Assembly (NCBI GenBank): GCA_021613535.1
Contig: CP075497.1
Coordinates: forward strand, 1,550,001 to 1,614,000
Source: Adineta vaga
Taxonomy: Eukaryota; Animalia; Rotifera
Reading direction: 5' to 3'
Length of the DNA stretch: 64,000 nt
Under the pieces are notes generated by a model, which was given only the letters and a program-made list of their open reading frames with translations, had not been told where the DNA came from and did not search any database. The position numbers and the translations under genes were made by a program. Shown here piece after piece: positions 31,299-50,007 of this stretch (position 1 is the first letter of the stretch; each line of letters starts with the position of its first letter).

Positions 31299-34200
31299 CT
31301 ATTCTGTTTCTTCATTTGTATGATTATTAGAAACAACATTGACTAGCATTCGTAAATGTTCAGCTTCAGTTGTTCCAGCTTGTTCCACAAGTGAAGTAAA
31401 GTGTGAAGTTGGATTCGAAAGTAAAGCATTTGGACTATCGAATTCAAGTAGTTCGCCATTATTGAGTACCTTCAAGAATAAGAAATTAAATTAAAGCATA
31501 TAGAACTAAGATTTATACGATACCATAATACGATCACTATTAATCACTGTACGCAAACGATGAGCAACAGTTAAAACTGTACAATCACGAAATTTTTCAC
31601 AAATCGTACGTTGTATAATTTCATCCATACTAAATAATATTGTTCAATTTATTTTCTGCCTATTCAAAATATCTTTAACTCACAGATTATCAACATTAGC
31701 AGTAGTTTCATCCATCACAAGTATTTTATTCTTCTTCAGAAAAGCTCGTGCTAAACATAACAATTGCTTTTGACCCACACTCAAATTAGATCCATTTTCA
31801 TTTATCGTTGATTGTAGTCCATTGGACATTTCTTTAGCTACTAACGGCTTCAATTCCACCTAAAGAAGAGAAAGATACTTTATAATCAAATTAAAAAATC
31901 ATCTCAAAGACCTGTTCTAGTGCATTCCATAGCTCACAATCTGAATAATGACCGAATGGATCAAGGTTACTTCGTATAGTACCAGTAAAAAGAATAGGAT
32001 TTTGTGATATAATTGAGATACGACTTCGTACATCACTCAAACCAATCGATACAATATCAATATCATCAATTCGAATTTGACCTTCAACGAGAGTACCCAT
32101 CCGAAAAAGACTTTGAATAAGAGAACTTTTTCCAGCACCTGTTCGTCCGACAATACCAATTTTCTCGCCACTTTCAATAGTCATTGATATATGACGAAGA
32201 GCTAGCGGTGATTGCGCATCAGTCGAATGACACATGGAGACATTATTGAAAACAATTCGTCCTTTAGATGGCCAATTTGTTGGTGGACGACGATTAGATG
32301 ATACTTGAGTAGATAATTCTTGATCGAGAGAACAATAGTCAACCACTCGCTCTACTGCAGTCATTTGTGCTTCGACATCCACAGATAATCTACAAGATTA
32401 GATACCAAAATGAAGTTAAGAAATGAATGAAAACTAAAGACTTTACCTAATAGCCAATTGAAGAGTTCCCATTAAATTAAGACTATATGGAAGGATAAGA
32501 GCGATATCAGCTGCTGAAATCTGTGTTTGATAGATGCGCAAAATCACAGCAAGAAATGTAACAAAAGAAATAAAAACCAAACAGATCCAGTCAAAACGTA
32601 TTGCTGCCCAACGATTAATTGTACAAATCAAATAGTTAGCTCGTGTATTATCATGTAAGCAGAGGAGAAATTATCGGAACATATTTTTCCAGCATGATAC
32701 GATCGAATAACTTTAAGTCCCTCAATAGTCGATGTTAGATATGATCCAAAAGGACTACGCGAAATGCCTTCAATACGTTTTACATCACGTAAACATCGAG
32801 CATAACGATGACGAATATAAATCATATTACCAACAGCTATGCTTGCTGGAATGAATGACCATGGATTAACCCATCCAATTAACAAGACGATACCAATTGC
32901 TTTGAAAAGATACTAAAAAACAAAAAGAAAAAAGTGTATGAAATAACTTCATATTCGATGGTTAACAAAATCGCTAAAAGTAAAATATCTGACAAAGAAT
33001 TCACTTACTTGGAGTAGATCAAATAAACTGATCGGAAGATAATCATCCAAGATAGTTATATCATTCGTAAAACGATTCATTATGCGACCTTGACAAAAAC
33101 AATAAATCTGATACATATGTAGATACATAATATTCATACCGATAGGATTCATATCGAAAAATGATATTGGAAATCTGATGAATTGACAAAACATTCTACT
33201 CATAACAGAAGAGAAAGCATGACACTTTAAATAATATTAGAATAATCACTTATTATGAAGAACTCGTCCAGCATTTAAACAAATAAATTCAACAATAACA
33301 ACACGAAATAAGGAAACAACAAAAATGGCAAGTACAGTACCTAAATAGAATTCCTATAATATACTACCGCGATAACAATAGCAAAGGTACATACCACAAT
33401 AAATATAGAAACGTTGATTTCGATAATTATTCCATTCAACATCAGTCATCGAATGTATTGTATCCTTTGTTATATTTGTACAATTCTCAAACAATCGATA
33501 TCGATGACTTTCATCATTACTCCACATTGCCAACCAGCGATCGCTAAATATCGCAATAATTTCTCTTCCCATACAGATAATTGACATCAAAGCAAAATTA
33601 AGACAAAACCCAAGACCTGTCCGTAAATATGAAACATAAACATTCCATTTGATTCTGCCTTCTTGTTTTGTTTCATTATTTGTTGATGGAAATAACATAC
33701 TCTTCTCATTCACAGATTCTGAAGTAAAAGAATCATCTGTAGACAAATCATTCTGTTGATTAGTCGAATCTTGTTCTTCAGATATATGTTGATGAATATT
33801 TTTGAGTAGATGAGCAAATGAAGATGAAGAATTCAACAATTGTTCATAGGATCCAATTTCTACTGAACCATTCTAACGAGAGAAACAAATAATACATTGA
33901 AAAATGATTATTTTTAATCATACATTATTTAACATAATAATTTTAGTCGCTTCTTGTAAGAATTGAATTTGATGTGTAGCTAAAATACATATTTTATTTC
34001 CAAGATATTCTTTGATTGATCTACAAGAAAGACAAAGTAAATGAAATATTCGATTTTGCTTTCCGATTATTTTTATACTTTTCAAAAAGATGTTTTGATA
34101 CTTTAATATCAACAGCAGAAAGTGGATCATCTAATAAATAGATATCAGCATCTCGATACAAAGCACGTGCCATATTAACACGAGCTTTTTGACCCTAAAT

Positions 34201-36509
34201 AAAACGAATAAATTCAATTAATATATCTCGTTCTTCAAAGAAAACTATATTACTCCAGATAACATTGAACCTTGATCACCAACAAGAGTATTAAAACCAT
34301 GTGACCATTCAATAAGATCCTATTCATCTCAGAAAATAAATTACAAAAGTTATATCATTAATACTTCTTACTTACAACATCTAGAGCAGTGGCATAAATA
34401 ACACGTTGAAATAATTTCGAGTCATATTCTTTTCCAAATAAAATATTCTCTTTAATACTTGACGAAAAAATCCCTATTTTCAAATTATGTATTTGTATAA
34501 ACTTTTATTTTTCAATAATGATTCCTTACAAGGTTCTTGAGGTACATAACAATACGAACCACAAAGCTGAATTTTTCCATCGAAATGAGTAATTTCATTG
34601 GAAAGTGTTTGCAAAAGTGAACTCTACAATTAAATAAATATTTAGATGTTTTCTATACTTAAATTTACCTTTCCCGAACCAACAGATCCAATAACACAAA
34701 TTAAATCGCCTGGATGTGCATTGAATGTTATATCTTTTAAACAAAATGATGTATCCTAAAGAAGAATATTTACAATGAAAGACAACCTAATGAAAGAAAC
34801 AACTTTTTCCCATTGTGCTCGTACGATATTGCATATAACTCGTGGTAATTCTTTCGTTAAATCCTCTTCAATCATTTTGTTCACTGATGCAGATATCAAC
34901 TGATTCCTATTTTCAGATTCCGGTAAGAGAAGAAATTTCTAAAAAAAATATATATATTTTTTTTAAATCTAAAGACAATTAAAATCGAACCTGAATTCGT
35001 TTTTGAGCAGCTAAATATAAAACAAGACAACGAATAGCAAGTGTAAAATAATGAACAGCACTTGATCGAATATGAATAAGCATACACATAGTAATAACAA
35101 AGAAACGCATATCAAATTGAATATGAAATAACCATACGATTGTGTATATCATTAGAAGTGTTATACTGATGTAAGTATGAGATAAAAGAGTTTGAATACA
35201 ATCCAGTATTACACGAAAAATATATAGAATCATTTCACGTCTAAAGTGGAATGAAGATTTTCTTGAAAAATTCAAATTTTCATCACTTACTTTCGTATTA
35301 ATTGAACTTTATTAATAAAAGTTGATTCCCAACAATACATTTTTATAATTCGTATTGATTTAATAATTTCATTAATGATCTTTACTCGTTCATCAGTTGC
35401 TCGCAAAATTCGAGTGCTATGATTAAATAATAAAGCAGTTTATGATGAGATAATTCAAATAAATTCTACCGAACATATAAAATCAGACGACTACAAAATG
35501 CTTGAACAAAGAAGAGTAGAAATGCATAACAAATTGCAATAAAAATCATATATCGAATAAATTTCCAGAAACAAATTACAACTAAAATCATTTCAAATGG
35601 AGTAATCTATAAAAAAAAAAGCTACAAAAATAAACAATTCAATTTATTCCTACGTGAACATACCCAAAGATAATTAATAAAATAAAGAGCCATTTCAATC
35701 TGTCCAGAATCATTGGCCATTAGACTAACAATACTACCTGAACTAAAACTATATGCTGAATGATTCGATAAATGAAGTACCTGGAAATTTAAATTGATGT
35801 TATCATTATTCGAATAAATATTATTTTTTACTTTACGAAAGATGATACCACTGTACGCAATACGCATTTTCATTGCATGAATACCTGTTCGATAGATGTA
35901 CTATACAAAATGAGTTCTATTATCGATGAGATTAAGAAGAAAATTATCGTACTTGATGCATGAGAAGACTAGAACACAGAGTTATTAGAATATTAGCTAT
36001 TGCTAAAAGCCATGCCATCCAGTTGGACATTTTTGAACATTGTTCAAAGAAATCCATAAAATAAATGATTAATAATGGTTGAATAATATGAGTTAATGTC
36101 TATGTGAAGTTTGAATTGAGTAATTAATCAAAGATATCGAAAGGGGAACTTACAATTGGAATAAGAAGTAAACCGATAAGAAATGGTGTCCACCCCATTG
36201 ACCGTAGAGTAGCTCTAATTAAACTTGGATTATGTGGATTTCGTTTAAGTTCATTGAGCCAACTTGTTTCGAGTTGTTCAGTGACTTTTGATGATTCAAG
36301 ATGATGAGGAATATCATAAAGATCGGAGAAATTCAAAGTGCTTTGTTTTTGACTTTTTGTGAGAAGAGATGATACCCAACTGTTTATATGTAGAGTAGAA
36401 AGAATTACTTTGAGATATTTTCCAAAAAAAAAGATACATACCTGTGAAAGAAACGTGACCATGCATTAGCAGTTAGCAGTGGACTTGGATTCGGCGAATG
36501 AAATGTCAT
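31299..36509 (-). CDS. ABC transporter subfamily C, MRP4/ABCC4-like (TMD-NBD-TMD-NBD, ~20 introns); one frameshift near 32670
   Basis: [24 protein letters not shown]; NBD1 GSVGSGKSS, LSGGQKAR, IYLLDD; NBD2 [23 protein letters not shown]. Expected [21 protein letters not shown] is out of frame by 1 nt with the upstream ICSD. Confidence 0.9.
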
Positions 36510-36658
36510 CTATAATGAACTTGTGTACACTATTTGATTAAATTTATCCTAAAAAAAAATGGCCTATTTTGTAAGTAGCAGATCAAATCATTCATGTATT
36601 TATTTCCATTTGAAGTGTATTTAGAGAATATATTTTTGTATTATTTTTTATATTGATC

Positions 36659-36840
36659 ATCTTGTATGACGGGAAATTTATCTTCGTCAAGATTTCGAAT
36701 CGAATGAGTCAATCCCATTATGTGGGTTCTTTGTTGTTCCCAAAGAAAACCCATGAAATACATTGAGATGACGATAATCTGATCCCACGTGCGTTGAAAT
36801 GGGAGAAAATCGTCGTCTTATTTATTTTCCTTCCTTCCAA
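36659..36840. promoter_or_regulatory. Copy 1 of a ~185-bp element, 150 bp upstream of the ABCC start codon
   Basis: About 85-90% identical (by-eye alignment), same orientation, to 48401-48587. The regulatory role is inferred from position. Confidence 0.7.
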
Positions 36841-49527: not shown

Positions 49528-49539
49528 GGGAATATTCCC
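49528..49539. promoter_or_regulatory. kappaB-like palindrome GGGAATATTCCC in the bidirectional spacer of the peptide pair
   Basis: Perfect 12-bp palindrome resembling Rel/NF-kB sites; binding is inferred, not shown. Confidence 0.45.
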
Positions 49540-49759
49540 TGAGTTATAAGTTTGTTTTTATCAAAATGGAAGTGTCTCATCGAGATAGCATATTGTACAT
49601 AATACCAGATACAGTATTATCTTCTTTTTCCCATCCTCATCTTACAACACGATAAAGATATATCTTTATATCTTGAGAGTATGGATGAGATGTTGCTGAT
49701 TGGATTTCACTCTCACTTCACTTAACTCTCGTATCATTATACAAAACTACAATATCATC

Positions 49760-50007
49760 ATGCATCGTTTACTTCTTTTTCTTCTTGTATTAACTATGGG
49801 TAAGTCATAGTGTTCAACAAAACATTATTATAGATGATTTATGTGTTGTTATATTTAATAGCTGTTGGAATAATTATGGCACAAAATTATGAACCTGCTT
49901 GCAATACTCCTTGTAGAACTGGTGGTCATGTTCCAACATGCTGCCGAAGCCATGGATACAGAGGAGGATGGTGTAACGGTGCTCGCTTTGCAGTCTGTTA
50001 CAACTAG
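49760..50007 (+). CDS. Diapausin-like antifungal peptide precursor, copy B (absent from the ORF track)
   Basis: Exons 49760-49799 and 49862-50007: MHRLLLFLLVLTMAVGIIMA|QNYEPACNTPCRTGGHVPTCCRSHGYRGGWCNGARFAVCYN. Pattern C-x3-C-x8-CC-RSHG...C-x7-C matches beetle diapausin (C-x3-C...CCRAHG...C...CN). Confidence 0.8.

Follow-up and report, generated by a model that had tools for sequence, protein, structure and literature searches.

The window analysed here, a stretch of 64,000 nucleotides of Adineta vaga chromosome 6 (CP075497.1, 13.89 Mb; positions 1,550,001 to 1,614,000), carries on its minus strand, within 17 kb, genes for an ABCC4-like transporter, a carotenoid-cleavage dioxygenase (CCD) and a type I polyketide synthase (PKS). 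The PKS and the CCD form a head-to-tail pair that is conserved in other rotifer sources, and we put at about even the chance that the two members of this pair work independently and that the ABCC gene is a bystander. The initial annotation of this DNA had proposed a cluster in which the three genes make, cleave and export a defence compound. This was not borne out, as the ABCC gene adjoins the pair only in A. vaga; most likely the three large genes do not form one pathway, and a three-gene defence pathway is unsupported.

The three co-oriented genes were located on the minus strand by Pfam matches and open reading frames (ORFs) at the places given by the initial annotation, and the short spacing of ~400 bp that it described between PKS and CCD was measured as 404 bp, from the PKS stop (40085) to the CCD ATG (39680). 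The same order on the same strand was detected in five sources, namely A. vaga, A. steineri (two assemblies, L009 and L010), a metagenome scaffold (L030), sequence from runs SRR279776xx (L027/L028) and a contig of ERR3089238 (L031), with gaps of ~690, 810, 215 and 200 bp in the four sources other than A. vaga. The PKSs of these five sources are only 59-71% identical, and the CCDs next to the PKS in A. vaga and in A. steineri belong to one orthogroup (support 93). The surroundings of the pair differ from source to source: upstream of the PKS there are peptide genes in A. vaga, a 706-aa gene in A. steineri and a UDP-glycosyltransferase gene in L031, and downstream of the CCD there is a Cys-rich gene in A. 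vaga, a 188-aa gene in A. steineri and an F-box gene in L027. The PKS-CCD junction is the sole adjacency common to all five loci, in a region that rearranges quickly, both flanks having changed at least twice.

The pairing was not found at a second A. steineri PKS of the same clade (L011) or at two Rotaria sordida orthologues (L012 and L014), and the CCD orthologue of a Rotaria sp. has no PKS within 7.5-10 kb. As the L011 and Rotaria orthologues do not show the pairing, a single origin of the adjacency, in the Adineta clade, is indicated. One origin provides no replication, and gaps as short as 0.2-0.8 kb also offer breakpoints a small target, so that the evidence for selection keeping the PKS-CCD pair together is moderate, not strong. 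With 4 CCD loci and ~22 ketosynthase (KS) loci counted in the 100.8-Mb genome, ~0.002 PKS-CCD pairings within 1 kb would be expected by chance under uniform placement.

From the comparison of sequences, the junction appears to have been assembled within the rotifer lineage and not transferred as a unit, a conclusion that is supported and that agrees with the assembly in an animal put forward in the initial annotation, the closest prokaryotic CCDs not being beside a PKS. To our knowledge, no known PF03055 CCD adjoins a PKS, and no PKS-CCD pairing was found described in the literature searched. Co-transfer of PKS and CCD from one bacterial cluster was considered as well and rejected, because a carotenoid operon or an unrelated context surrounds the closest prokaryotic CCDs.

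Bdelloid rotifers are the main example of animals domesticating foreign biosynthetic genes, and published attention has focused on loci that contain non-ribosomal peptide synthetases (NRPSs). The block described here lies at ~1.59 Mb of chromosome 6, in a foreign-gene-rich arm, and the GC content of the window is 25-32%. Seven biosynthetic regions have been published for Chrom_6 and ~40 genome-wide (Nowell et al., 2024, PMC11258130). The present locus falls between regions 6.2 (1.12-1.16 Mb) and 6.3 (1.77-1.79 Mb) and is in neither list (PMC11258130), and a stand-alone reducing PKS that ends in a thioesterase (TE) is missing from the published A. vaga catalogue.

Structure and affinity of the PKS and the CCD

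Single exons or ORFs were used as queries in place of spliced proteins, and the pieces were kept separate in the alignments; RNA was available as contigs of four runs (X1, X3, X5 and X10), from which presence can be read and levels cannot. The PKS gene (40085..48298, minus strand; annotated as I4U23_027727) was read from its Pfam domains, its motifs and the A. steineri protein P0002 as encoding an iterative highly reducing type I PKS of ~2,700 aa. Matches were obtained to ketoacyl-synt, KAsynt_C_assoc, Acyl_transf_1, PKS_DH_N/PS-DH, ADH_zinc_N, KR, PP-binding and Thioesterase, giving the order KS, acyltransferase (AT), dehydratase (DH), enoylreductase (ER), ketoreductase (KR), acyl carrier protein (ACP) and TE in one polypeptide; Ketoacyl-synt_C was recorded for the annotated protein P0001. 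No methyltransferase domain was found with Pfam in this PKS, although its paralogues do carry one.

By the usual definitions of PKS catalytic motifs, the translation contains DTACSS, GHSVGE, NAFH, HxxxGxxxxP, GMDSL and GYSFGG, together with HGTGT and GHTEG and, in the KR, a GGxGxxG loop (GGLGGIG) with a YNAGN-type Tyr. The catalytic residues were read as present in each case, that is, the KS Cys, the AT Ser, the DH His, the KR Tyr with its NADPH loop, the ACP Ser and the TE Ser.

The exon structure was read against P0002, the closest PKS of A. steineri. Exon 1 ends at 47581 and is followed by a 51-nt GT..AG intron (47530-47580), and a further GT..AG intron of 59 nt (42217-42275), across which P0002 aligns, is spliced out in a contig of run X10. 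The initial annotation had spoken of a PKS in need of frame correction, but the break at ~42265 proved to be this spliced intron and the break near 39362, which falls in the CCD, a surplus base of the assembly. An apparent 1-nt frame break was detected in the KS, at ~47428-47431, with conserved residues continuing on either side of it; the ORF of the relatives is unbroken where it falls, and the gene otherwise keeps ~2,700 open codons at 27% GC. The model I4U23_027727 (2391 aa) omits the open stretches 46491-46957 and 41122-41540, both conserved in A. steineri, and draws its first 30 residues from the adjoining peptide gene (49171-49269); it is probably distorted around the KS frame break.

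Regarding its affinity, the KS scored ~87 bits against fatty acid synthase (FAS) and 133-185 bits against bacterial and fungal PKSs. The AT-DH-ER piece reached 261-277 bits with Dictyostelium Pks16 (9nju) and mycocerosic acid synthase (MAS, 9d2y), compared to 158 for FAS, these two enzymes being its best solved matches (E 1e-76 to 2e-81); they share with the present PKS the order KS-AT-DH-ER-KR-ACP, and the present enzyme differs from them in its C-terminal TE. EcPKS1/2 scored well under the bacterial PKSs. In database searches rotifer proteins came first (48-70% identity; A. steineri, Rotaria and Didymodactylos), followed by bacterial matches at ~28-31% identity, and every named non-rotifer match was bacterial. 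The microbial type that the initial annotation had assigned to the PKS was therefore upheld, by scores above those with animal FAS and by these matches, and the gene is best described as a bacterial-type, intron-bearing PKS, which the comparisons support. A native FAS or a PKS of the animal FAS-like kind (AFPK) was also considered, as these have the same overall domain order and length (PMC10764717), but the KS scores differ and both the KS and the middle piece score higher against microbial PKSs, so this identity was rejected. Candidates for the native FAS map to C3:18.2 Mb and C4:3.6 Mb, away from this locus.

When the tree was rooted with bacterial sequences, the window PKS fell in a clade of five (support 99), two of them from A. 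steineri and two from further sources. The Rotaria and Didymodactylos PKSs fell outside this Adineta clade of five and, therefore, the PKS family is old in bdelloids. The A. vaga genome holds ~ten PKS paralogues at 40-56% identity, some of which are the PKS parts of published PKS-NRPS regions, among them 6.6 and 6.7 (PMC11258130). The present gene resembles the bdelloid NRPS/PKS loci of Nowell et al. (2024, PMC11258130) in being a bacterial-type megasynthase with introns, near the end of a chromosome arm that holds many such loci and from a bdelloid-wide family. It is unlike them in standing alone, ending in a TE and lacking NRPS modules, and in having a conserved CCD neighbour, which is not mentioned in that work (0 occurrences of 'carotenoid').

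The CCD gene (37953..39680, minus strand) encodes a carotenoid-cleavage dioxygenase of the RPE65 family (PF03055) of ~553 aa in two exons, as judged by Pfam and by spliced RNA contigs. Its ORF pieces scored 215.6, 59.1 and 27.6 bits against PF03055 (cut-off 27). An intron of 65 nt (38921-38985) was removed in RNA contigs spanning 37901-39734. In three runs the RNA contigs are one base shorter than the assembly at position 39362, and hence the frame change in the CCD is an assembly indel; as this indel splits the first exon into two frames, the annotated protein I4U23_027725 (429 aa) is truncated at its N-terminus. In the relatives the first exon of the CCD is unbroken, at ~240 aa. The A. vaga enzyme has His in all four columns that are invariant for His across 15 full-length CCDs, and the conserved Glu/Asp columns of the second shell are kept as well, so that it shares with the prokaryotic CCDs and with BCO1, BCO2, NinaB and RPE65 the common PF03055 signature of four His and second-shell Glu.

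The best solved match of the CCD was the archaeal NdCCD (6vcf, 168 bits), compared to ~110 bits for NinaB and RPE65, and its best non-rotifer database matches look prokaryotic. In the tree, the bdelloid CCDs formed a clade (support 100) apart from the sampled animal enzymes (97); a clade of rotifer and animal CCDs was not rejected by the approximately unbiased test (p = 0.34), so that the CCD may be foreign or native. The closest prokaryotic relative (P0155) ends a crtE-crtB-crtI gene row on a metagenome-assembled contig (L032:5473-11401), a context that points to carotenoid-type substrates for the family. This gene row resembles a carotenoid-to-apocarotenoid operon.

Three further CCD paralogues were found in A. 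vaga, none with a PKS alongside. A copy within C1:17315258-17318922 has the last exon only (I4U23_005571, 313 aa), and the closest CCD of Rotaria sp. (P0122, 313 aa) is likewise without a visible first exon, so this short form may be a conserved type or a relic. On a bdelloid-like ENA contig (L019:4707-12358), three CCD paralogues stand in tandem, with a Ty3-type retroelement after them. A metagenome scan for more CCD loci returned only three uninformative contigs, each <2 kb.

The ABCC gene and the repeat-bracketed block

The third large gene (31299..36509, minus strand) encodes an ABCC4/MRP4-like transporter and has many short introns; it was identified from ABC_tran and ABC_membrane matches in its ORF pieces. 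Its subfamily was scored on the exon of the second nucleotide-binding domain, for which the top solved match was ABCC4/MRP4 (E 5e-55), with 186-189 bits for ABCC4 entries and at most 167 for ABCC1, 2, 3 and 5, and the N- and C-terminal exons are also ABCC4-like. At least nine ABCC4-like paralogues are present in the A. vaga genome, the closest at C3:13.427 Mb (70% identity). No ABCC match was found at L009-L016, L027, L030 or L031, and none at the four other PKS-CCD loci. The synteny across bdelloids that the three-gene proposal implied thus held for the PKS and the CCD, in five sources, but the ABCC gene was present in none of the other four.

Two direct repeats of ~190 nt were detected around the pair. 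Repeat A (36647..36838) is located between the divergent ABCC and Cys-rich genes, at 138 bp upstream of the ABCC ATG, and repeat B (48389..48581) lies 91 bp upstream of the PKS ATG; they are 88-91% identical, in the same orientation, and the only two copies in the 100.8-Mb genome. Between them they bracket exactly the Cys-rich gene, the CCD and the PKS (36839-48388), an 11.7-kb block. In A. steineri (L009) a CCD 3' fragment, followed by a copy of the Cys-rich gene, was found upstream of the PKS, which is the remnant expected of a tandem duplication of such a block. The simplest reading of the repeats, from their position and identity, would be that of a duplication or insertion footprint. As they bracket the block, the upstream sequence shared by PKS and ABCC is explained, and the ABCC gene may have acquired a duplicate of PKS upstream DNA; that it uses this duplicate would be speculation.

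No relative of repeat A was found in A. steineri or at the paralogue loci, and none of the four RNA runs yielded a contig over repeat A or the ABCC 5' end. The Cys-rich promoter shares at most 730 bp with the divergent ABCC gene, and repeat A is inside that stretch. A transposon or an RNA gene was also considered for the 190-nt repeat and rejected, given its two genomic copies, the lack of an Rfam match and substitutions that hit its small ORF.

A region of C3 carries a duplicate of the HD-domain gene that adjoins the block in the window. The closest ABCC paralogue is ~210 kb away from it, and no PKS or CCD match was detected there, which fits either the arrival of the block beside older resident genes or its loss from the duplicate region.

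Transcripts, predicted chemistry and possible functions of the pair

The CCD was assembled full-length and spliced in runs X1, X3 and X10, which come from two studies. The PKS was represented by low-depth fragments in X10 and by one 183-nt piece in X5, with nothing assembled in X1 or X3; the RNA contigs also left uncovered the ~350 bp that separate the PKS stop from the CCD 5' end. As the CCD was assembled where PKS mRNA was not, it has its own transcript. Co-expression of the two genes, as anticipated in the initial annotation, was consequently not seen in the contigs. One X10 contig joins position 38533 of the CCD to position 40561 in the TE region of the PKS, skipping 2027 nt, with 21 nt on one side of the joint, and is probably an assembly chimera.

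The presence of DH, ER and KR without a methyltransferase predicts a largely saturated, unbranched chain released by the TE. By the rule that distinguishes malonyl from methylmalonyl specificity, the AT motif suggests malonyl units. The default prediction from this domain content is that the PKS product would be largely saturated and hence a poor CCD substrate; a polyene is not predicted. The ER shows 60-76% identity among the orthologues of the Adineta clade and 50-60% in Rotaria, values that the AT and DH share. Its nucleotide motif reads T-A-T-S-G-V-G compared to A-A-T-G-G-V-G in bacteria, with the Ser common to the CCD-adjacent clade, and SGVG is found also in active MECR-type enoyl reductases. 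A degenerate ER yielding a polyene was therefore rejected, the domain being conserved like the others and its motif mildly altered.

If the two enzymes work independently, the PKS would be primed by a phosphopantetheinyl transferase (PPTase) encoded elsewhere, and would build an unmethylated, largely saturated acyl chain from malonyl units for release by the TE. The CCD would be expressed alone and would cut a carotenoid- or apocarotenoid-like polyene, probably a dietary one, at a C=C bond, and the ABCC pump would be a general exporter beside which the block lies by chance. The junction would persist through tight linkage, rearrangements breaking the larger intergenic gaps. PPTase genes are indeed present elsewhere in the genome, on C2 and C5, in agreement with the initial annotation, which had the enzyme acting in trans.

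Several observations weigh against such independence. The PKS-CCD adjacency is the only one kept in the five loci while the flanks changed, which hints at selection, the chance of such retention being ~0.1-0.15 by a rough estimate that assumes an equal break rate at all three junctions. Both genes are transcribed and, apart from the apparent KS break, intact, and the RNA contigs show presence only and not expression levels. In addition, some cycles of an iterative reducing PKS can bypass the ER, so that an unsaturated product is possible, and a search of the genome with two bacterial queries did not find crtI or crtB, a result that says little.

These points bear on a possible, though clearly less probable, two-gene pathway of the Adineta lineage, in which the ER would be skipped in some cycles and the CCD would cleave the PKS product to an aldehyde or short lipid used in signalling or defence, with the ABCC gene outside it. 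Such a pathway would account for the same-strand adjacency at 0.2-0.8 kb in five sources whose other neighbours are all different, for the single orthogroup (93) that unites the A. vaga and A. steineri CCDs next to a PKS, for the intact catalytic residues and transcription of both genes and for a pairing made in a rotifer and not inherited as a bacterial operon. However, the adjacency has one inferred origin and hence no replication, it is missing from L011 and from the R. sordida orthologues, and the Rotaria CCD is without a PKS in 7.5-10 kb; the CCD was assembled where the PKS was not, the ER is conserved, and no PKS-CCD pathway was found in the literature searched. That the Adineta clade joined an acquired reducing PKS to a CCD-type dioxygenase, which would cut a polyketide with conjugated or isolated double bonds to a bioactive aldehyde or short lipid, is rather doubtful. 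If it were true, a PKS-CCD pairing of a kind described from no organism would have been put together de novo in the genome of an animal and retained across speciation; a functional pair would mean that an animal had assembled a new pathway from separately acquired parts, with a lipid-derived metabolite implied. If the pair is not functional, the locus is a caution that neighbouring synthase, oxygenase and exporter genes can arise by subtelomeric segmental duplication.

The remaining explanations are much less probable. A PKS recently disabled by a real KS frame break, in a decaying subtelomeric neighbourhood where only the CCD is in use, is very improbable: the 1-nt break lies between KS residues conserved on both sides, PKS RNA is scarce and published A. 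vaga clusters carry frameshifts, but the ~2,700 codons are otherwise open at 27% GC with all catalytic motifs intact, the adjoining CCD has a proven 1-nt assembly indel, and the relatives' ORF is unbroken at this point, with the downstream PKS intron still spliced. The make, cleave and export defence cluster, with PKS and exporter co-regulated by the 190-nt element and the peptides in the same defence island, we consider hardly credible. The co-orientation of the genes within 17 kb is compatible with it, as are the element found at two places of the genome only, 91 bp upstream of the PKS ATG and 138 bp upstream of that of ABCC, and the recurrence of peptide genes beside PKS and CCD paralogues, and in A. 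ricciae induced transporters of the ABCB1 and MFS types border PKS-NRPS clusters (PMC11258130). Against this, none of the four other PKS-CCD loci has the ABCC gene, the position of the repeats around the entire block fits a duplication or insertion footprint, the ABCC 5' end and repeat A are without an RNA contig in the four runs, and the C3 region with the HD duplicate has an ABCC paralogue ~210 kb off but neither a PKS nor a CCD.

Small secreted proteins and other neighbouring genes

The secreted Cys-rich gene that the initial annotation had noticed between the oxygenase and the ABCC gene is present and transcribed, on the plus strand (37238..37729). It consists of a 5' untranslated exon reaching 37250, an intron of 122 nt (37251-37372) and a coding sequence at 37382-37729 for a protein of 115 aa with a hydrophobic leader at its start; RNA contigs covered 37373-37709 in the four runs, and 13 loose letters match 37238-37250. 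The protein has ~25 relatives, small and secreted, some of them fused to CAP/SCP domains, as observed for tardigrade P0215 (Hypsibius exemplaris) and metagenomic P0210.

Upstream of the PKS, two genes for small secreted six-Cys peptides form the arms of a 204-nt inverted duplication. One, of 60 aa and defensin/diapausin-like, lies at 49175..49357 on the minus strand and was read from its ORF with no Pfam match; the other, of 57 aa and likewise defensin/diapausin-like (I4U23_027728), lies at 49834..50007 on the plus strand and its ORF gave sub-threshold Pfam matches, to Defensin_2 (E 0.087) and to the diapausin family PF08036 (E 0.15). The initial annotation had placed diapausin-like genes ~900 bp before the PKS; the position was right (877 bp before the PKS ATG), but the label was not secured by these sub-threshold hits. 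Among 8 family members, 3 gave sub-threshold matches to PF08036, the best reaching 16.5 bits (E 0.0089) compared to a cut-off of 25 bits. The peptides resemble the CS-alpha-beta defensins and diapausin in having a signal peptide and a mature part of ~38 aa with six Cys, including a CC pair, and are unlike these families in that their Pfam scores are all below the curated cut-offs.

The AlphaFold2 model of the 57-aa peptide (mean pLDDT 65) has residues 33-39 in a helix, and its strands comprise 44-48 and 52-56. The top Foldseek matches of this low-confidence model were all CS-alpha-beta defensins or scorpion toxins, none of them significant (E >=0.4), and a solved diapausin was not among the 50 fold matches listed. 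A word-index search with the 57-aa peptide matched only the peptide itself. Seven peptide paralogues were detected in the genome, three of them within 1 kb of the CCD copy on C1 (17.315-17.319 Mb). The peptide, PKS and CCD families apparently travel together by segmental duplication near chromosome ends, so that regional dynamics would account for their proximity equally as well as a common function would.

Some neighbours of the related loci are also worth recording. In L031, and in that source only, the PKS has upstream of it a divergent gene (648-2099) for a UDP-glycosyltransferase whose C-terminal domain is EryCIII-like, a possible tailoring enzyme. Ahead of the CCD-less A. steineri PKS of L011 stand genes for an ADP-ribosyltransferase and for a protein of the amine-oxidase family (L011:6016-8825), and a peptide gene of the six-Cys family is found 700 bp downstream of this PKS (L011:18876-19034). 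The other genes of the window encode an NHL-repeat protein (2216-3497), a DUF1749 hydrolase (5897-6727), a fragment of a rhodopsin-family G-protein-coupled receptor (14036-14473) and an HD-domain protein (50581-51280). The hydrolase gene is single copy in the genome, and the HD-domain gene, which is HDDC2-like, has an 85% identical duplicate at C3:13.215 Mb.

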